DNA of 64,000 bases from Calcarisporiella thermophila CBS 279.70 (GCF_041956535.1 NW_027192194.1:1271531-1335530), one strand, 5' to 3'. Shown: positions 53,655 to 63,872, counted from the first letter of the stretch. Numbers and translations are program-made. Notes: generated from the letters alone by a model not told the origin.

Positions 53655-54497
53655 CTATTCACTAGCCTTTGCCTCAGCTTTGGGTTTCGCTTCAGCAGCT
53701 TTGGCACTTGTAGTAGCGGTTTTAGGCTTTGCAGCCTTTGCCTTCGACTTAGTCTTTGGCTTGACACCCTTAGCTTTCGCTTTCTTTGCCCCGGCGAGTT
53801 GAGCGGCCCCGACTGCCTTTTCGGATTTTGCGCCAGCGCTACCGGCAGGTGCGGTCTTCTCCTCAACCATCTTGACGGCATCCTTTCCAAAGTCGAAAGC
53901 CATTTGGATAATTTGGCCAATTCCATCACCGAGTCTAGTGCCCACTTCAGTTGCCTGGGCGTCGCTCACATTGCCCTGCTCCTTTGCAACCTTCTTGGCA
54001 ACCTCCACACCTAATTTACGCGCATCTTCTATACTGCTTGTGGGAGTCAAAAGGGATTGGGCGTCTTTCGCGTTGCCTTTCAAGGTAGTTTCAGCGGTCT
54101 TTCCCAGGTTTCCTCCTGCTTTATTGCCCAAATCTTTCCCAATTTCGCTGCCGACTTTCTGCCCATACTCTTCGCTTACACCAACTGCCTTTGCAACCAA
54201 TTTACCAAACATACCTCCTCCGTTAGAGCCAATTAGGGATCCAACCGTGGGGCCGAGTTGGCCAACAAGATCTAAGATGCCATTGTCTCCGCCCCCATTT
54301 TTATTATTGGAACCCGTCGCGGCATTCAGGAGACCTTGCAAACCTTGTCTTTTCTCAAGTTCATGAACTTCCGAGATTCCGACTGCCTGGTTAATGTCCA
54401 CCGCGCTCACTCCTTTACTGGTTGGAACTGCGCTCACTCCAGATACGAGATAAAGACTTCCCACGATAGCAAAACAATAAGGAATGACTTTGACCAT
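53655..54497 (-). CDS. Secreted Gly/Ala/Lys-rich protein with Kex2-like site and cationic tail
   Basis: Signal peptide ending VSA|VP; ELEKR|Q; Gly-rich amphipathic segments; K/A/P-rich C-terminus; TATAAAA ~90 nt upstream. Confidence 0.75.
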   Translation of the reverse strand: MVKVIPYCFAIVGSLYLVSGVSAVPTSKGVSAVDINQAVGISEVHELEKRQGLQGLLNAATGSNNKNGGGDNGILDLVGQLGPTVGSLIGSNGGGMFGKLVAKAVGVSEEYGQKVGSEIGKDLGNKAGGNLGKTAETTLKGNAKDAQSLLTPTSSIEDARKLGVEVAKKVAKEQGNVSDAQATEVGTRLGDGIGQIIQMAFDFGKDAVKMVEEKTAPAGSAGAKSEKAVGAAQLAGAKKAKAKGVKPKTKSKAKAAKPKTATTSAKAAEAKPKAEAKASE

Positions 54498-56529
54498 ATT
54501 GAAGACAAATATAAGTTGAGATATACAAAAAGAATTTGAAATATGCTGATGTTGGAGAAAGACATCGAGAGAAAACAGGGCTTCTTTTATATTATCTAAA
54601 GTATAAAACTTCTATTCCAAATTAAGGAACTTTTCGGATAGGATTTTTCGGCCCCTGCGTTTGTTGCGTAGAAAAAGCTCAGGGTATCCCTCAACTCAGG
54701 TTTAACGAAGCTGTTTAAAATCCAAGAGTGCGAGGTGAAAACGATCACATTGTGGGAAGCAGAATAAGCTCGAATCTTATTAATAACATATTTTAAGTAT
54801 TTTTGTATTAAATATTGACATCTAAGGTAAACAAGTTTCCAGGCTTTTGGTACTTGAAGTGTCAGTAAAGAGAAACTCTTCTGAATGTTTCATTAACTTA
54901 TAGTATAACTAAGTGGTAATATGAACAGAGAATGCATTAGTTAGTTCACTTAAACCTGTCAGTTTGTAAAACTATATGGCGAACTTAGGAAATGAGGGAA
55001 AAAAATTTATTTCATTAATACAATATAATAGTCAGGATTTTGTTCACTATTCTTTTGATATGTGGAGACCAAATCTATAGTGATTAAGCATGGGTCATCT
55101 TATGTGCAAATTTAGTTAAATTCTTTTGCACCCTTTCCTATTTTACATGATCATAGACAGTGATAGCGCACGGTCCACCTTTTGATCCATGAAAATCCGA
55201 GAAATTTGGTAATTTGCGGATACGCGATTGCACGTTCAGATTCATAAATTAGTATCCCTAATAGCTTAGGTTAACACAAAAAACTTAGAGACCCATTATG
55301 AAATTATAATTCAAAAGGAGGAATGCACCCGATAGTTTATTCATCGCTTCATATAGAAAATGACGGTTGAACTCATTGATATGCGATTCATTCCGCTTGA
55401 ACCCGCTGTCGGAATACAACTTGAGTTGAATACTACTTCCATATCTCTAGGACTCTTGCCAAACTTTTACTATTTTATATGGTCAAAATAGCAAATACCC
55501 TATGCTAAGAGTCAGCTAATCCTGAACAAAAATTACAGTGCAACCCCACTTTATGCGCACTATAAAACATGAACTTCTCTCGTCAAAATGTTTTGTCAGG
55601 GTCTCATTGGGGGAATATTGAGCTTTAGTATACCGATATTTTTAATACCATTTGAAAAAAAGTTGGCCTTTCTATTTTAGCAGGTAGGACTGGTGGGATA
55701 AATACGATAAGTGTCTAAATGCAAGACAAGTAAAATAACGCGCATAGTGATTCTAAGGGATATATTCGTCTTTTTAGCAGGTTCAAACGCATATGCGACT
55801 CGGAACATGACATCTCCTCGCAAAGCCTACTAAAAAAAGCAAATTCAAATCCTGTATATAATACAAGCGAGCCCTTAATAGTGCTAGTGATATAAAGTGT
55901 ATCGTCCCTACCGACTCATCCAGTAGTTAGAGGGACCAATAGATCAACTTCATATTTATTCATCTTTGTGATATTTTTCAGTACTCCTTCTAAAGACTAT
56001 ACGAGAAATTTGGTCAAATTTTCTGGATTTCACCTACTCTGAAGTTAATCAAGTACAATACAAGGAGTGGTATTTTTAGGAGCGAGGAAAGTTCAAGAAT
56101 ATTTCAAAATATTTGTGGATTACTATGCCTAACTATAAAACAATCCATGGGAGAGGGTGGTAGGAGGGTGGCTGAGTTATTTTTAGGGTCACAGAAGAGC
56201 TTTCAAGTTTGTTTTGGCACGTGTGGGTCTCCAAGCCAAAAATGGTGACTATTAAATTACTTGTATTTTTGAATGTAAAGTATATAGTCCAAAAAACAGG
56301 TCCTATGCATCCAAAACTCTTGTCAATTGAATGCATATATCTACCTAAGATTTCTGAAACACCATAAATCGGTGGCTTTAGGCACATGTGCTAATCATCC
56401 TCTAATGCAGTAAATTAACAGGGGGCTTTGCAGGTTTCTAAATGGTTGGCTGGAAAACAACTTTCGATGCATAATATGTTACTACGTCGTATGTTATTTA
56501 TATCCTAGTTAGAATTTCTATATTCTTGC

Positions 56530-56537
56530 TATAAATA
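56530..56537 (+). promoter_or_regulatory. Putative TATA box of the amine-oxidase-fold gene
   Basis: TATAAATA 57 nt before the ATG at 56595. AT-rich context lowers specificity. Confidence 0.45.
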
Positions 56538-56594
56538 AAGTCCATCCACAATATTTAAAAATTTAGCACTTTTTAGCAGACTCTTAAAGACAAT

Positions 56595-58232
56595 ATGAAA
56601 ATCAACCTAGTCTTGTCATTGTTGCTCTTAATCTGGATATCTTGCGTGTTGGCACACAAGGGAAATACTGAGAAGAAACTGAAGATATATTTCGATGATA
56701 TCAAGGGACCAACACAAGAACAATTGGACAACATTGCAATAAAGGCGTTTAAAGATCGTAGGGTGAAGAAGTATCTTAAAAATAACCGCTATAGGCTTCT
56801 CTCCGTCGAAATTGTTAATGAAGAAAATGAAGAAAAGGGTGAAGAATATATTCCAAGCGAGTATTTAGCTACTGTCTACGATTACACAAACAATCGTGCC
56901 ATCTTAATAAGAGGTTCAATTAGAAATGGCAAAGTTAACTTGGTGGAAGAATCAGGATTACAACCTCATCCAAACAATGAAGAATTTGAAGAAGCGGTGG
57001 AAATATTGAGAGAGAACGGGAATTTTTCATATCCACTTCAGCATAATCTTACGAACGTGTTTTTGGATATCGTGCCAACTATCATAGGCGAATTTCCTGA
57101 TGGTCGAACGGAAAGAATCTTAGCAATGCACCTTCACTCAGAAAATCCAGAATATCCTAATGAAACTGTGGGCGTGAACATGAGCCGCAGGACCGTAGTA
57201 AGATATGGGCTGGATCATCCTCATGGATCTTGTGGAATAGCTCCAGGAATGGATAGAGGAAGTAAGGAAGGGTTGATCGGGTCAAAGCGGATTCGAGTTG
57301 TGAGAGGAAATACCAAACTATGGGAGTTCGAGGTAATTAGGCCTTCCTCTTCATCGGGTACAAAAACAAAGAGATCTGGAGTCGAGTTAAGAGGAGTGCG
57401 ATACAAAGGAAAAAAAGTCTTGTATCGAGCTCATGTGCCAATACTAAATGTCAAATACGAAAATACTTCAATCTGTGGGCCTTATCGGGACTGGCAATGG
57501 GAAGAGTCAACATTCGAAGCTTATGGAGTGGATATTGGCAGAGGAATACGCTTTTGTAGTCAACCTCCGAGAACTATTCTGGAATCCAAAAGTGACACAG
57601 GAAATTTCCGTGGAGTCGCAATATATGTTGTAGGACAACAAATTGTATTAGTTAGTCAGTTAAAAGCGGGATGGTACCGTTATATAAGTGAATGGAGACT
57701 GCACGCGAATGGAACCATCCAACCTCGGTTCGGATTTACAGCAATAAACAATCATTGCGTGTGCAACAAACATACTCATCACGTTTATTGGAGACTCGAT
57801 TTCGATATCCGTACAGCAGGAAACAACATTGTGAGAGAGTATAATGATCCGCCCATTTTTTCCAGTAAATACCACACGAAATCATATGAAATCAACAGAC
57901 TAAAAAGCGTATCCCATCGCAGGCATTGGGAGATCAGAAATGCGGCAGGCGGAGACTCGTACGCGCTGATTCCAGGATCACAAGATGGCATGGCGGATAA
58001 CGAATTTGGATATGGGGATCTATGGGTACTAAAATATCACAAAAATGAACTGGACGACGGGAGAACACTAATACAGGGGGAGGATGCAAAGGCGGATTTG
58101 AAACGATTCGTTAATGGAGAGTCAGTGTACAAGAAAGACGTAGTATTGTGGTACGCTGCGCATTTTAGTCACGTGATACATCATGAATTAGGTAGAGTAG
58201 TTGGACCCGACTTAACCCCCATCAAATGGTGA
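56595..58232 (+). CDS. Secreted copper amine oxidase-fold protein with variant cofactor motif (GWYRY), intronless
   Basis: Signal peptide; AGWYRYISEWRLHANGTI, HTHHVYWRLDFDI..GNN and DVVLWYAAHFSH align with the CAO catalytic-domain motifs. Confidence 0.78.
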   Translation: MKINLVLSLLLLIWISCVLAHKGNTEKKLKIYFDDIKGPTQEQLDNIAIKAFKDRRVKKYLKNNRYRLLSVEIVNEENEEKGEEYIPSEYLATVYDYTNNRAILIRGSIRNGKVNLVEESGLQPHPNNEEFEEAVEILRENGNFSYPLQHNLTNVFLDIVPTIIGEFPDGRTERILAMHLHSENPEYPNETVGVNMSRRTVVRYGLDHPHGSCGIAPGMDRGSKEGLIGSKRIRVVRGNTKLWEFEVIRPSSSSGTKTKRSGVELRGVRYKGKKVLYRAHVPILNVKYENTSICGPYRDWQWEESTFEAYGVDIGRGIRFCSQPPRTILESKSDTGNFRGVAIYVVGQQIVLVSQLKAGWYRYISEWRLHANGTIQPRFGFTAINNHCVCNKHTHHVYWRLDFDIRTAGNNIVREYNDPPIFSSKYHTKSYEINRLKSVSHRRHWEIRNAAGGDSYALIPGSQDGMADNEFGYGDLWVLKYHKNELDDGRTLIQGEDAKADLKRFVNGESVYKKDVVLWYAAHFSHVIHHELGRVVGPDLTPIKW

Positions 58233-59550
58233 ACTATTCCTTCACTAGCATCAGAATATTAAATCAGAGTAAATTTTATTCTTACCATTAATTTATTATT
58301 ACGAATAAGTAAAATATAGTAGTAGTATCTTATAGTGCTATGCAAAAGGTTATTATGTTTGCTAAGCGAATAGTTTTAATAAAAAAATAAATACATGTGA
58401 TTTAAATAATGGGTTTCAATCATGGGTAAAATTTCCTTAGAGGAAAGGGCAAAAATAAACGCAAAGTGTAGACGAAAGAATTGGGCAAACATTCGAAAGC
58501 TTAAAGATTTTCGTGTATTAATATTTTTGCATTCGTTTAATTTATGTTAGGATATAATCATATTTACCACTATTATTCCAACCATCCTAAAGCTATCATC
58601 ATTTTCAATCTATATGTCTTCATTCACATATGCTATGACATTAGTGCATTTAATTTTCATATTTGATATGTATATTATATAGTTAAATTAAAAGAACAAT
58701 TAAAATATCACGATTTAATATGATAATCCACTCCTATCCTTAGAATGAGACGAATTGGAATGGACCTTCCCAATATATACTGCAGGGATCAATTTTGAAA
58801 ATCACCCTTACAATAAATGCTTTAATAGCTAATAGAAATATTTCACATCGTATACTGATCAAATGGAGCTTAAATTCAAAAGCTTGTTTTTTATACTATT
58901 CCGCAATTCAGCATGGTGAGGCATACAGCTATAAAAGGCTGTAACAAGTATATACATGTATTGCCCATACCATCGCGAGATTTGCATTAACCAGCGTGGT
59001 ACTGGATTATGGATTTGCGATGATACAGAAAACTCATGTTTTGGTGGTATAACCAAAGTCAATGTATTTAAATTGTCGGGTTGTACTTGAGCTTTTAATA
59101 AGATATAAAGTGAAGGTGATCTCAGTAATCATAAATTATTTATTTTAAAAAAGGTTGATACAATATTAGTTTTCTTGAATAATAGTACAATATATTGTAA
59201 TATTATCTATATCTATTATAGCAGTAAACTTATCAGAGTTTATGCGTTACAAAGATATTCTACAAATCAGATTTAGTTAAACTGTAATTTAGGTTACAGT
59301 AGTTGACAATTACAAAATGAAACTTCATAAATCTCAATCACATTGTCAAGTCACTTTTAAGTTTATACCAACAATAGTGTATATTCCTTTCAATCTTAAG
59401 TTCGCAAACGTTTAAAAATTTGCATAAAAAGTGTCATTTGAAGCATATAAGTCATATCTAAATATTCGAGAGCAAATCTATATTTTATTAACAATATTTT
59501 TGGTAGAATTTATAAATAAAAGTAACGCACATTTTCAGATCCTATTGATT

Positions 59551-59811
59551 TTACACGCAATCATAATGAGGGACACCCAACTCACGGCAGCATACTGGGA
59601 ACCAGCCATTCAAGGAATTGTCATTCTTCACGCAATATCCCTTATAATCCGAATAAACTCCTTTTTTAATCTCACAGCAGCGTTTAGTTTGGGAATCAGC
59701 CCGACTATCGTTCTTCCACTGACAGCGACAGACCGAGCTGGCATAGACTTGCCCAAATAGCGCGATTAAGGCAAAAAGAAGGGCGAAAGAAACAGCAATC
59801 TTGGAATTCAT
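59551..59811 (-). CDS. Small secreted cysteine-rich protein (8 Cys: CxC..CC..C..CC..C)
   Basis: Clear signal peptide MNSKIAVSFALLFALIALFGQVYA; ~62-aa mature peptide with an even Cys number. Confidence 0.78.
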   Translation of the reverse strand: MNSKIAVSFALLFALIALFGQVYASSVCRCQWKNDSRADSQTKRCCEIKKGVYSDYKGYCVKNDNSLNGWFPVCCRELGVPHYDCV

Positions 59812-61436
59812 ATTGCAATTAATAAAATTAATGTTTTAGCTAGTGATAATGCAAGAGACATTTGCATTTGAGCGGTTCATTTAAATATTGATTGTCATCG
59901 GATTTTTGTGATATATCTGACTCATAAGTTGTGGATAAAAAAGAATTCTTTAGAGATTGAGGGAACGTGAAAGTTAGCAAAAAATCTCCTGATTTCGAAA
60001 ATGATCCCGCCACGCAATCCAGCCACAACCTTCCTTTATAGAGGGCTAAAAGATAACTGGCCAGCCTTCAAGGTTTACATCGTAATTTTCAACTCAGTTT
60101 TCCCACACAAAAATACTTTTATATTCATTCACTATTTGGGCAACTTAATCGAAATATCCGGGATTTTGGAATATCTAAATTAGTTTAATCTCCAATTTAC
60201 ATTGTTACATATTAATCTCGTTTCGTTATATTTCTACAATAGAATTAGATTAGGAAGAAATCTGATGGAAGAGCTTTTACTTTGTTTCTAGTTAGAATTG
60301 CCATCTCTTCCTTGGTTTTCTTTATTTCATTTAATATAAAATAAGGATCATATCTATTTCATGTCGCAAATGTTTCCTCGAATATTTATATTATTTTCAT
60401 ATATATTCTACTATGTATGATGTATAATATTTGTGTAATGAAAGAATATCTCTAATTGATGGTACTAAATTTGATTTCAATTGTAAAGAAAGGAACAATA
60501 TTCAAAACATTTTGATGTCTAAAACAATATACATCATCTAATATTTTCTGACTATTCAGTTCTAAAAATATATACCACTATCTTGTAGCTTCAAATTTTA
60601 CCAAATTAGAGTTTTCCACTTCGATTTCTTTTCTATTTATTCGACCGCTTATTTTTTTAACCAAACTTTTCTCACTTAATCATCTCACTTATCGGGGACT
60701 AAACTATTAGAATATTATGAAGCCCTACATTGCGCCGCTATTTGGTTGTTAAAATTTGTTCAATTGTGGCTTTACCATTGTAATCAACTGTTTCTAATAA
60801 TTATAAACTGTTCATTTTATTATCAAAAATGTGTATTGAAAACATTCTTCATATTGGTAGCGCAACAATACAAAGTGTGATTGATTTCCTAGATACAGAT
60901 ATCTATAGATAGGCTTCATCACATTAGCCAGAGTATTATAATAACATCGTTTATCGTTTTACCGTTTTTTTCAATTATATAATTTACTAAATTTATTCTC
61001 CATCTGCTGTCTGTACATGAACTTAAATAATTGGGGGTACGAATGAATCCCATCGTCAAAATCGAACCCAAAGTTTTCATTAAAAATTTAATGAACTTTG
61101 AACTACCTGTTTTCTATAACTAAAATGGTATATTGCGTGGTGAGTCATTCAGCCAACTGTTGAGAAAAGCAGTATGGTATGTTAATGTGTATACAGTATT
61201 AGGTATACATAATCATCTTAAGTAATCAATGGCGATGCTTTAGATATTATCATATTAAACTTAGCCAATGAACCTGATTTAAATATTAAATATGACTTCA
61301 TATTATGATAAATAAAATTATAAAAACGGGTGTGACAGTATCTTTTTGGTATTAACATTGAGCTAAGCCTGAAATCACTGTATCTCAATTGAGGAGCTGA
61401 TTTGCTTAACTTTCAATCCGATTCCCAACATCTGAA

Positions 61437-61444
61437 TATAAATA
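61437..61444 (+). promoter_or_regulatory. Putative TATA box of the M15 peptidase gene
   Basis: TATAAATA ~76 nt before the ATG at 61521. Confidence 0.45.
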
Positions 61445-61520
61445 GAAGTTATTTACTTTGAAACCATTATAGAAACCGCAATTATTCTTTGTCCACAGGC
61501 TTAGTCATTCTTCGTTATAA

Positions 61521-62129
61521 ATGCGTTTAGTTTTGTATGTCGGAGTCTTAATCCTCGGGTATGCAGGTGTTTATGCCCAAGATTACAGCAAACTGGTTCC
61601 ATTGCCAGGAAATCTAGGGGTCCAAAACGGATTAACTTACTGCCCTCCTAATATTATAACTTCCATTCTTGGCACTCCTTGTACTCTAAAGCCAGATTGT
61701 TCCCCTGTCACTAATCCAAAAGTAAAGAGACTTCTTGTAACAGGAAAAGTCGGCCATATAACTCTCTATGGTTTAAAGCCAGCTATTGAGGCAGCTGTTC
61801 GAGCACTCGTTAATGTTCAAAAGGAAAAGCCAGATCTATTCAAAGCCCTTGGGTATTCAGGAATGCTATGCTGTCGCCTAATCCGTGGATCTTCCACAAG
61901 TCCATCCAATCACTCCTGGGGGACAGCCATTGATTTTAACATTAATGGTAAACTTGATCCACGGGGAGACGGTAAAACTCAGCAAGGTATGCTTGAGCTC
62001 TATCCCTATTTTAACAAAGAAGGTTTTTACTGGGGTGGAGGATTTAGCAGTGCATCTGAGGACAGCATGCATTTTGAGGTCGCAGAACAAACACTTCGTC
62101 GCTGGCAAAGTGAAGGAAAGTTCGACTAG
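61521..62129 (+). CDS. Secreted M15-family Zn peptidase (peptidoglycan L-Ala-D-Glu / D-Ala-D-Ala peptidase-like), intronless
   Basis: Signal peptide; R119, SNHSWGTAID (H131, D138), WGGGF and EDSMHFE (D181, H184) form the complete LAS/M15 Zn site. Confidence 0.88.
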   Translation: MRLVLYVGVLILGYAGVYAQDYSKLVPLPGNLGVQNGLTYCPPNIITSILGTPCTLKPDCSPVTNPKVKRLLVTGKVGHITLYGLKPAIEAAVRALVNVQKEKPDLFKALGYSGMLCCRLIRGSSTSPSNHSWGTAIDFNINGKLDPRGDGKTQQGMLELYPYFNKEGFYWGGGFSSASEDSMHFEVAEQTLRRWQSEGKFD

Positions 62130-62509
62130 CTTCAATATTTAATTTATAAATAGTTGGTGCTTTAAATATTTTAATCAGCAGTCTATTTTTTCCTAGTACA
62201 ATAAATGTCTTAATATAATGCGCAAATTCAAATTGTGGTAAATGATGATTCAATTCAGTCTAAATACAAAAATATACATAATAATAATTAAATGAACCTA
62301 TATGCTAAGAGAGGACACTAGGATTCATAAATGCCTAAAATCCTAGTATAGTCCCAGTATCCGGGCCAGATCGGATAAATACCAAGAAGTTGAATCCAGC
62401 AATGTATCCAGTGAAGCTACAAGATCTTGATTCTTCTAATAAAATTGGCATGAATGATGGTTAAGAATAGCAAAGAGTAATGATTTTAATTGGGAAGAGT
62501 TTTAGTCAA

Positions 62510-63180
62510 TTTAAACGCATTTATTGATCCATAATACTTCAAAGACTCTAGGTGGTCTTCAGAAAAAATAGTACAATATGCAGCATTAAGCTCTCCATCG
62601 ATACGGCGCAGATTTCCAGTCCCATGATCAATTACACAACCTCACAACAAAAATTCATTTCATGCCTGTTTTAATGTGGGCTGAATATATCTAATACGAA
62701 GCGGTTCTCCTTTACGCTTGTAGTAGTATTGATTTCTTATTGCATTCGTGACATTAATTTTTGGAACATTTCCAATCTTCCACAGTCCAATTTAAATGCT
62801 TTCTCGCAAACTTCAGGTGCCATCTACGGTGCGCAGCTAAGAGAAGAGGCTTTTTTGGGCGCGCTCGAGTCAGTACCTCTTCTATATGGATTACCCTCCT
62901 CACGGTATCAAAGGTCAATACTGTTGATTCCTCTTTGAAAATCCTTCTCACATCGGTTGAGTTTTTTGCGCTGACCCGAAGTCACCAATGTTTCTATCTT
63001 TCTCTCTTACTCAAAATACGAAGGCGACAAGCGGGTCGCTTTTAAGATCGGGGCGTCGCCTTACTTCTTATCTTACTCTCTTAGCTGCTGTAGTGAAATG
63101 AATGTCCAATGCATCGGCGAGTTGATAAAAAGCTTTTCCCTCATTTGCGAAATGAATAATGCTAGCGCAGACCGATTTTG
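62510..63180 (-). mobile_element. Degenerate Tc1/mariner transposase remnant
   Basis: TVRRVI....ARPKKPLLLAAHRRWHLKFARKHLNWTVEDWK (Tc3-type HTH/linker); upstream LADALDIHFTT; downstream GTGNLRRIDGELNA fragment; broken by stops and frameshifts. Confidence 0.8.
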
Positions 63181-63521
63181 TTTAAAAAACACAAGTAGTG
63201 GTTAAGTTGTTTTAATAAACAAGAAAAGAGAGAAAAGCATCAAATAGATGAACAAAGAGCATCAAATTTACAAAAATATTTTATTATCCAAAACACAGCA
63301 ATATACAGATATTCACTTTTTCAAATTCAGTACCCCGGTAAACCAGTTTTCTTTCTTTAAGCCAGGATGGCACATACCTCTGAAAATAGTGTAGGAGTTG
63401 TAGTTTTTTCTCAACAAATTTTCACTGTTCCTCTGAAAAATCATTTAATATCAAATATTACCAAAGGTCGAAGATATATTACTGCGGTTGAGCTGGAGGT
63501 TAAGATTTCACCGTTCTCACT

Positions 63522-63872
63522 TCAGTAGCACCTGTTGTTTCCAGTGCATTTACCCCGCCAGCAGTATACCTGCTCGGCACGGCCACAATTTCTTAAGTCA
63601 TGGTTTCCCGCGCCACTGATTGCCGCAACTAGCTTACCCGCGCCTTTTATTAATTTGCACTCATTGCAGATATTGCCCGGACGAGGCCAGAGTTTCGCGC
63701 TTAAAACGCAATCATTACTGGGACCGTTGATGTCTTTCCAACCCTCTTGGTTTACGCAGCGAAGGAAAGTTTTACCGTTGCAAGCCGTGAACTCCACGGA
63801 AATTTGATCGTCTGTGCATGCTGCTGCGACAGAAGTCAGGAAAGGAATGATAATAAATAGCGAGAGTTTCAT
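63522..63872 (-). CDS. Small secreted cysteine-rich protein (10 Cys)
   Basis: Signal peptide MKLSLFIIIPFLTSVAA; ~98-aa mature region with 10 Cys; intronless; higher GC than its flanks. Confidence 0.75.
   Translation of the reverse strand: MKLSLFIIIPFLTSVAAACTDDQISVEFTACNGKTFLRCVNQEGWKDINGPSNDCVLSAKLWPRPGNICNECKLIKGAGKLVAAISGAGNHDLRNCGRAEQVYCWRGKCTGNNRCY

Follow-up and report, generated by a model that had tools for sequence, protein, structure and literature searches.

Subtelomeres are where fungi keep fast-evolving secreted genes, a known pattern of genome compartmentation, and AT-rich or subtelomeric 'two-speed' compartments have been described mainly in pathogens of the Dikarya. Eukaryotes have also acquired antibacterial genes from bacteria, among them GH25 lysozymes and Tae/Dae amidases. 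In a survey of 44 early-diverging fungi, 33% of xenologs had signal peptides against a background of 7.7%, and more than 50% were intronless; neither M15 peptidases nor Calcarisporiella are mentioned there (Ciach et al. 2024, PMC11291939). Here we analyse one chromosome end of Calcarisporiella thermophila CBS 279.70, which is among the listed thermophilic fungi (PMC11393059). The window, by which we mean the whole stretch of 64,000 nucleotides that was analysed, is GCF_041956535.1 NW_027192194.1:1271531-1335530 (C4:1271531-1335530, where C4 denotes the contig), within a 28-Mb genome in 116 contigs. Its positions 53655-63872 hold five genes, g1-g5, which we think are probably the first part of a subtelomeric accessory compartment: the last ~21 kb of the chromosome carries eight intronless genes for predicted secreted proteins together with relics of Tc1, gypsy and Mutator-like (MULE) transposable elements, and the genes are probably independent of one another rather than parts of one system.

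Like the 'two-speed' compartments, this chromosome end is telomere-adjacent and low in GC, and contains transposable-element relics, a tandem family of cysteine-rich proteins, orphan genes and long spacers. It differs from them in belonging to a thermophilic, early-diverging saprotroph, and in that two of its eight genes are bacterial xenologs; it showed no sign of repeat-induced point mutation (RIP) or of host-related effectors, at which no search was aimed. The locus is a clean telomere-anchored example from the little-studied Calcarisporiellales, and it points to an early-diverging fungal secretome that draws on orphan genes, on duplication in tandem and on genes captured from bacteria. Contig C4 is 1,346,566 bp long and its terminal ~100 bp (C4:1346463-1346566), 11 kb past the end of the window, consist of (TTAGG)n. 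Elsewhere in the genome this repeat occurs only at the ends of five contigs (C10, C13, C38, C67 and C87), always pointing outward, and we therefore take it to be the telomere repeat. The unit is the pentamer TTAGG, known as the 'arthropod-type' telomere unit, and not TTAGGG. The segment at 53655-63872 thus lies 11-21 kb from the chromosome end. Beyond the window it carries on through three more g5 paralogs and fragments of a gypsy-type reverse transcriptase and a MULE transposase to the telomere, which brings the number of intronless secreted-protein genes to eight rather than five. The features of the compartment are as follows.

53655-54497, minus strand: g1, a 280-residue orphan with a signal peptide, then Lys-Arg (Kex2-like) at residues 49-50, an amphipathic central part rich in Gly and a basic tail rich in Lys and Ala
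56595-58232, plus strand: g2, a 545-residue protein of copper-amine-oxidase fold with a signal peptide, belonging to the 'W-Y-R-Y' family of bacteria
59551-59811, minus strand: g3, an 86-residue secreted mini-protein with eight cysteines in the order CxC...CC...C...CC...C
61521-62129, plus strand: g4, a 202-residue predicted secreted Zn peptidase (Pfam Peptidase_M15_4) of bacterial or phage type
62519-63439, unstranded: a decayed Tc1/mariner-like transposon relic, of which the genome holds at least 25 diverged copies (64-85% identity)
63522-63872, minus strand: g5, a 116-residue secreted protein with ten cysteines, the first of four tandem paralogs
C4:1336416-1336775, minus strand: g5 paralog, beyond the window
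C4:1339424-1339774, plus strand: g5 paralog, beyond the window
C4:1341518-1341865, plus strand: g5 paralog, beyond the window

A previous reading of the window from its sequence alone (the sequence-only reading) had described an AT-rich island made only of intronless secreted-protein genes and proposed that they form a co-located antibacterial or symbiont-control arsenal. Its gene inventory holds up well. All five open reading frames (ORFs) lie intact and without introns at the positions and on the strands given above, and each begins with a basic n-region, a hydrophobic core of 10-15 residues (maximum Kyte-Doolittle 10-mer 2.3-3.1) and a c-region of small residues. Such signal-peptide-like N-termini are found in 8 of the 99 ATG-initiated ORFs of at least 80 residues across the whole window, and five of these eight are g1-g5. 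The absence of introns is further illustrated by g2 and g4, which align end to end with bacterial homologs, and by g5, which does so with its paralogs. The picture of an AT-rich island survives in part. Spacers have a GC content of 26-35% against 41-50% in the coding sequence of the five ORFs, and the Tc1-like relic is real: at 0.9 kb it is the sole repeated DNA within the island, and an ORF inside it (62754-62951, minus strand) matches HTH_Tnp_Tc3_2 at E 8.5e-6, under the Pfam cut-off. Low GC, however, is not confined to the island. Across the window GC declines steadily from ~53% over 1-32 kb to 44%, then 38%, and finally 37% on the side nearest the telomere, with an onset near 32-43 kb, so that AT-richness forms a gradient of more than 20 kb that begins 10-20 kb upstream of the island and has no sharp edge at 53.6 kb.

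The same reading had supposed that the island was partly assembled by horizontal transfer. This now extends to two genes, g4 and also g2, both of which are nested among bacterial sequences in trees. Third-codon-position GC is 0.38 in g2 and 0.34 in g4, which is the local composition and not a bacterial one; since the 1.35-Mb contig that carries both genes also has a telomere at its end, we regard them as integrated rather than as contamination. Being intronless and equipped with signal peptides, they follow the pattern reported for xenologs of early-diverging fungi (PMC11291939). Alongside the bacterial origin of g2, the telomere 11 kb further on and the three additional g5 paralogs go beyond what the sequence-only reading contained.

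The assignment of g4 as an M15 peptidase of peptidoglycan-cutting type is borne out. It matches PF13539 (Peptidase_M15_4) with an E value of 3.8e-14 and 53.4 bits (cut-off 25) over profile positions 2-70 of 70, and has both motifs, SxHxxGxAxD and D/ExxH. Residues H131, D138 and H184 fall on the Zn ligands of Ply500, an L-alanoyl-D-glutamate peptidase and endolysin of a Listeria phage (PDB 2vo9). None of the three varies among 14 aligned family members from fungi, protists, cyanobacteria and alphaproteobacteria, and a PHROG search of g4 gave weak endolysin matches. g4 has the motifs, metal ligands and Pfam score of the M15_4 family, which includes Ply500 and the VanY-type D-Ala-D-Ala carboxypeptidases. 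Unlike these, it is nuclear-encoded in a fungus and bears a eukaryotic signal peptide, and unlike relatives with SH3_3 or PG_binding_1 fusions it has no cell-wall-binding domain.

Of the 363 homologs of g4, almost all come from bacteria or metagenomes. The eukaryotic homologs that could be named are a paralog on contig C50 (81% identity; NCBI protein VTP21DRAFT_9659 of Calcarisporiella thermophila), a protein of Basidiobolus ranarum (65%) and MMETSP transcripts with a C-terminal SH3_3 domain. In a quick IQ-TREE analysis, with support given by the Shimodaira-Hasegawa-like approximate likelihood ratio test only, the three fungal sequences formed one clade (93) that was sister to the protist SH3-fusion clade (98), and the pair fell inside a cyanobacteria-like clade (94). 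Cysteines 54 and 116 are confined to the eukaryotic sequences, except that C116 is also present in one cyanobacterium, and their sharing is consistent with one lineage of the gene in eukaryotes; C41 is found in the fungal copies only. Between g4 and its C50 paralog the number of synonymous substitutions per site (dS) is 1.4 and the ratio of nonsynonymous to synonymous substitution (dN/dS) is 0.09, which indicates that both Calcarisporiella copies have long been kept functional. Because the N-termini of bacterial relatives are hydrophobic too, the enzyme was extracytoplasmic already before transfer. We regard g4 as a bacterial gene domesticated in a fungus, and as a predicted Zn-dependent M15 peptidoglycan peptidase with intact metal ligands, duplicated and under strong purifying selection.

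Like the captured GH25 and Tae/Dae genes, g4 is an intronless gene for a bacterial wall-degrading enzyme with a signal peptide, kept under selection and patchily distributed among eukaryotes (Calcarisporiella, Basidiobolus and a protist clade); it differs from them in enzyme family (M15_4). Our literature searches on M15 in fungi and on C. thermophila found nothing specific, and the clade of fungal and protist M15 peptidoglycan peptidases appears worth taking to the bench. The protist members, which come from MMETSP and metatranscriptome data (P0004, P0007-P0009, P0011, P0012, P0018 and P0051), have a Ser-rich linker followed by the C-terminal SH3_3 wall-binding domain. Near the C50 paralog we also noted another copy of the Tc1-like relic and, 4 kb away, a 169-residue ORF with a signal peptide and a repetitive body rich in Tyr, Gly and Cys (C50:36016-36525).

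The second xenolog, g2, had been called a protein of copper-amine-oxidase (CAO) fold, and both profile and structure agree. It gives a partial match to PF01179 (3.3e-14), and an AlphaFold2 (AF2) model with a predicted local distance difference test score (pLDDT) of 78.6 finds AGAO, ECAO, HPAO and pea CAO as its best Foldseek hits (E ~1e-20). These are whole-length matches to classical CAOs, taking in D2/D3 and the catalytic D4 beta-sandwich, with TM-scores of 0.46-0.53 and 12-16% identity. The closer relatives of g2 are ~530-residue prokaryotic proteins with 41-56% identity. There are 2,197 matches in the protein collection and at least 577 loci (41-50% identity) in species-representative prokaryotic genomes, spread over Acidobacteriota, Actinomycetota, Chloroflexota, Nitrospirota, Bacteroidota, Bacillota, Proteobacteria and Myxococcota, with one archaeon. 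No other fungal sequence is present among the best 120 homologs. In a FastTree phylogeny g2 is nested among bacteria on a long branch as sister (support 99) to a groundwater-metagenome protein, whose contig carries back-to-back prokaryotic genes. We conclude from this placement that g2 is a domesticated bacterial gene. Its capture left a trace that can be read: the N-terminus is hydrophilic in 118 of the 120 best homologs, while g2 begins MKINLVLSLLLLIWISCVLA. Since the relatives have no signal peptide and the fungal copy has one, we infer that the signal peptide was most likely gained after transfer from bacterium to fungus.

Within bacteria, the neighbourhoods of 80 g2-family loci revealed no conserved neighbour and no hint of function. 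Small ORFs upstream of the gene in two bacterial contigs raised the idea of a partner of the ribosomally synthesized and post-translationally modified peptide type; we dropped it, as no neighbour is conserved over the 80 loci and the small ORFs in Nitrospira are insertion-sequence-like fragments, and recurrent neighbour 'clusters' proved to be shadow ORFs within the gene itself. In 7 of the 80 loci (L089:5599-7746 and six others of Solirubrobacterales type) a gene resembling galactose oxidase, another copper oxidase, with Kelch and galactose-oxidase-like E-set domains lies directly downstream. In Nitrospira sp. SG-bin1, the g2 homolog is flanked by two 55-residue ORFs (L020:5745-5912 and L020:8166-8333) that are ~50% identical to one another and resemble fragments of IS3-family OrfA, a hint that genes of this family can sit on mobile DNA.

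What g2 does chemically is harder to align with the classical enzymes. CAOs are marked by a T-x-x-N-Y-D/E consensus around the tyrosine that becomes trihydroxyphenylalanine quinone (TPQ), three strictly conserved histidines, an active-site tyrosine and an invariant catalytic aspartate (Klema and Wilmot, PMC3382800). Changing the consensus Asn to Ala leaves only 5-10% TPQ, and the catalytic Asp of ECAO is essential, with only Glu substituting weakly at a kcat lowered 6.4e4-fold (PMC3382800). In profile and pairwise alignments with E. coli TynA and human DAO, Y361 of g2 aligns to Y496 of TynA, the TPQ tyrosine; H393 and H395 correspond to TynA H554 and H556 and to the H-T-H of DAO, and H526 to TynA H719. 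Y361 and the three histidines are invariant across 29 family members. By pairwise alignment, Y288 (in VKYEN) is probably the counterpart of the active-site tyrosine in VPYGD, TynA Y399. The surrounding consensus, however, is replaced by K-A-G-W-Y-R-Y, of which W360, R362 and Y363 do not vary among family members; an invariant C-x-C immediately precedes the HxH, and the loop from the tyrosine to HxH is 32 residues long against 58 in TynA. The catalytic D413 of TynA lands in a gap in the pairwise alignment, near which the family has an invariant E304 and a common D313, and the hhalign match spans only residues 351-525.

Compared with the TPQ enzymes (AGAO, E. coli TynA, HPAO-1 and human DAO), then, g2 keeps the whole-length fold, the precursor tyrosine and the three Cu-binding histidines, and departs from them in its low identity, its invariant G-W-Y-R-Y and C-x-C, its shorter loop and its unaligned aspartate. 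Given the replaced consensus, the unaligned Asp and the published mutant effects (PMC3382800), we hold classical amine-oxidase chemistry to be doubtful and not established for g2. g2 is a predicted Cu-binding protein of CAO fold whose active site is probably Tyr-derived or Tyr-centred. A bolder reading takes the W-Y-R-Y proteins as an unrecognised class of copper enzymes on the amine-oxidase fold, in which the invariant Trp, Arg and C-x-C around the kept tyrosine and histidines suggest that cofactor or substrate differs. In this scenario one of them would have been made secretory by a thermophilic fungus and placed beside a captured peptidoglycan peptidase and killer-toxin-like proteins; the products would work jointly against bacteria outside the cell, with their expression turned on from subtelomeric chromatin. 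We regard this combination as a long shot. The family has no NCBIfam equivalog and no characterised member, and our search for papers on 'copper amine oxidase-like' proteins returned none of relevance. As a very large, uncharacterised bacterial family of CAO fold with an altered active-site motif, it deserves bench work.

The two disulfide-rich peptides of the sequence-only reading, g3 (eight cysteines) and g5 (ten), are members of real gene families with paralogs. The g5 family has six members, four in tandem here and one each on contigs C47 and C12, with ten invariant cysteines and a dN/dS of 0.3-0.6 where synonymous sites are unsaturated. Searched exhaustively with the family profile, 1.84 billion representatives gave five matches, of which one is a credible outside relative (P0245, 105 residues); no recorded gene encodes precisely the P0245 product. 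Matches to giant proteins (P0242-P0244) were treated as repeat-inflated non-homologs; one of them, P0243, is a bacterial protein of Ig-like repeats without cysteines. The AF2 model of g5 (pLDDT 84.8) is an all-beta sandwich, and ~20 of its top 25 structural neighbours are beta-gamma-crystallin domains, including MiAMP1, WmKT and SKLP. With these domains, whose fold is a double Greek-key beta-sandwich, VIA-align gives Z values of 6-7.1, where anything below 8 is in the chance range, at root-mean-square deviations of 2.3-3.4 over 69-85 residues, and the best Foldseek E values are 0.016-0.02. The predicted single-domain all-beta sandwich of ~90 residues is what g5 shares with small secreted beta-gamma-crystallin proteins such as WmKT of Williopsis mrakii, SKLP and AFP1 of Streptomyces, the plant protein MiAMP1, spherulin 3a and APP of Neurospora. 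Setting it apart are the low Z values and its own ten-Cys frame; neither Crystall nor any other Pfam family matched g5 at E values up to 1. NCBIfam and PHROGs searches of g5 gave nothing credible, and its Atlas neighbours are unnamed small Ascomycota proteins of ~116 residues with TM-scores of ~0.6.

Do these genes act together? The sequence-only reading had them combine wall lysis by the M15 enzyme, oxidative attack by H2O2 and aldehyde from the CAO-like protein, and membrane-active or toxic cysteine-rich peptides into one co-regulated arsenal against bacteria or for the control of symbionts. Several observations are consistent with it: secreted proteins are predicted from all eight genes, g4 belongs to a genuine peptidoglycan-peptidase family and has intact ligands under strong constraint, the fold neighbours of the 10-Cys proteins include the antimicrobial or killer proteins MiAMP1, WmKT and SKLP, and g1 is strongly cationic. 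The parts that go beyond the inventory fared poorly. Oxidative attack would need active-site chemistry for which g2 lacks the T, N and D/E of the TPQ consensus and an alignable catalytic Asp, although it keeps the tyrosine and three histidines. Nothing we found points to membrane activity, and g5 models as a beta-sandwich. Linkage is not conserved either. The intronless Basidiobolus ortholog of g4 sits in an ordinary neighbourhood of housekeeping type, among kinase, pentatricopeptide-repeat, hydrolase and cytochrome P450 genes. The C50 paralog lies in no duplicated block: a segmental duplication of the island onto C50 was considered and rejected, because only the M15 coding sequence (78% identity) and a Tc1 relic match, in a different arrangement. 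Fungal orthologs of g1, g2 and g3 with which linkage could be compared were not found. No 8-10-mer upstream motif was shared by at least 4-5 of the eight regions beyond what shuffled sequences gave, in a test that is weak in AT-rich DNA. Clusters of secreted genes beside a telomere with transposable-element relics are a known pattern and need no functional coupling, and the subtelomeric site and the relics account for the clustering without a shared function. That the genes act together as one antibacterial system is not supported, the arsenal as a whole seems to us unlikely, and a new kind of defence system is not established.

Some points weigh against our own preference for a compartment of independent genes. 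Eight consecutive secreted genes are a striking run; it is real, inflated by the tandem duplication that accounts for four of them, and there may be a functional reason for the linkage. The Basidiobolus gene is the only fungal M15 ortholog outside the C. thermophila genome with comparable context and comes from a very distant relative, and the weakness of the k-mer test cuts the same way. Signal peptides were called by a hydrophobicity heuristic rather than by SignalP, a look-up of sequencing runs listed no RNA data so that any of the eight genes could be silent, and the assignment of g5 to the beta-gamma-crystallins, at Z 6-7, lies below a safe level.

The compartment of independent genes nevertheless remains the reading that we prefer. 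Such a chromosome end would gather secreted, lineage-specific and horizontally acquired genes, and co-location would reflect where new, dispensable secreted genes survive and duplicate rather than a shared pathway. Within it, g4 would be exported and cleave the peptide stems of bacterial walls, allowing the fungus to compete with or feed on bacteria; g2 may be a secreted Cu-dependent oxidase, possibly with a non-canonical cofactor environment; and the modelled 10-Cys proteins could be stable beta-gamma-crystallin-like binders or toxins.

The same enzymes may instead serve nutrition and the fungus's own biology. In hot compost rich in bacteria, the M15 enzyme would draw nitrogen and carbon from the peptidoglycan of bacterial necromass, the CAO-like g2 would obtain nitrogen from amines outside the cell or cross-link wall proteins, and the cysteine-rich proteins would have structural or adhesive roles or belong to the spore surface. 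C. thermophila lives as a thermophilic saprotroph, and classical fungal CAOs are nitrogen-scavenging enzymes. A PF01179 search of the genome found no canonical CAO, the bacterial-type g2 being the sole match, and in a genome of this kind a nitrogen-scavenging role for g2 is possible. Purifying selection on the M15 genes fits any conserved enzymatic role, and beta-gamma-crystallin domains are not confined to toxins, being present too in Neurospora APP, spherulin 3a and DdCAD-1, non-toxic proteins of fungi and slime moulds. Orphan tandem families that diverge fast, on the other hand, are more typical of interaction than of structural proteins, and we consider this nutritional reading possible but rather improbable.

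At the lineage-specific end of the compartment stand g1 and g3. As the sequence-only reading had it, g1 is a cationic protein with a Kex2 site, its Lys-Arg at residues 49-50 and Lys/Ala tail going with a net charge of +12. It has no homolog among 5.8 billion proteins and no paralog in the genome, where it is single-copy; Pfam, NCBIfam and PHROGs returned no credible family and the Atlas no usable relative. Its structure model has a pLDDT of 0.60. g3 has one distant paralog, on contig C16, that is 33% identical and retains the cysteine frame. It belongs to no Pfam, NCBIfam or PHROG family, and its Atlas matches are generic small secreted proteins only (at most 0.87). We considered whether g3 might be a hydrophobin. 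Hydrophobins have the pattern C-CC-C-C-CC-C, and we rejected the assignment, as g3 and its C16 paralog have CxC-CC-C-CC-C and no Pfam match. These comparisons place g1 (an orphan), g3 (a near-orphan) and the 10-Cys family (nearly orphan) as lineage-specific genes.

Genes of this kind invite the suspicion that some, g1 above all and possibly g3, are not functional genes but subtelomeric ORFs that are silent or in decay, the more so as g1 is without homolog or paralog and the region is rich in transposable elements and close to the telomere. Yet a 280-codon frame at 50% GC within DNA of 26-35% GC is very unlikely to arise by chance, and we take g1 to be a real gene on account of the length of its frame and of how far its GC stands out from its surroundings; it also has a canonical signal peptide and the Lys-Arg site. 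The cysteine framework that g3 keeps in common with a paralog of 33% identity, and the purifying selection on g4 and on the g5 family, speak in the same direction, and we judge a non-functional origin to be highly improbable. In the C12 member of the 10-Cys family (C12:839200-839643) we observed a 30-residue pro-region that ends in Arg-Arg right before the first cysteine. With the Lys-Arg of g1, this suggests that several of these predicted proteins undergo Kex2-type processing.

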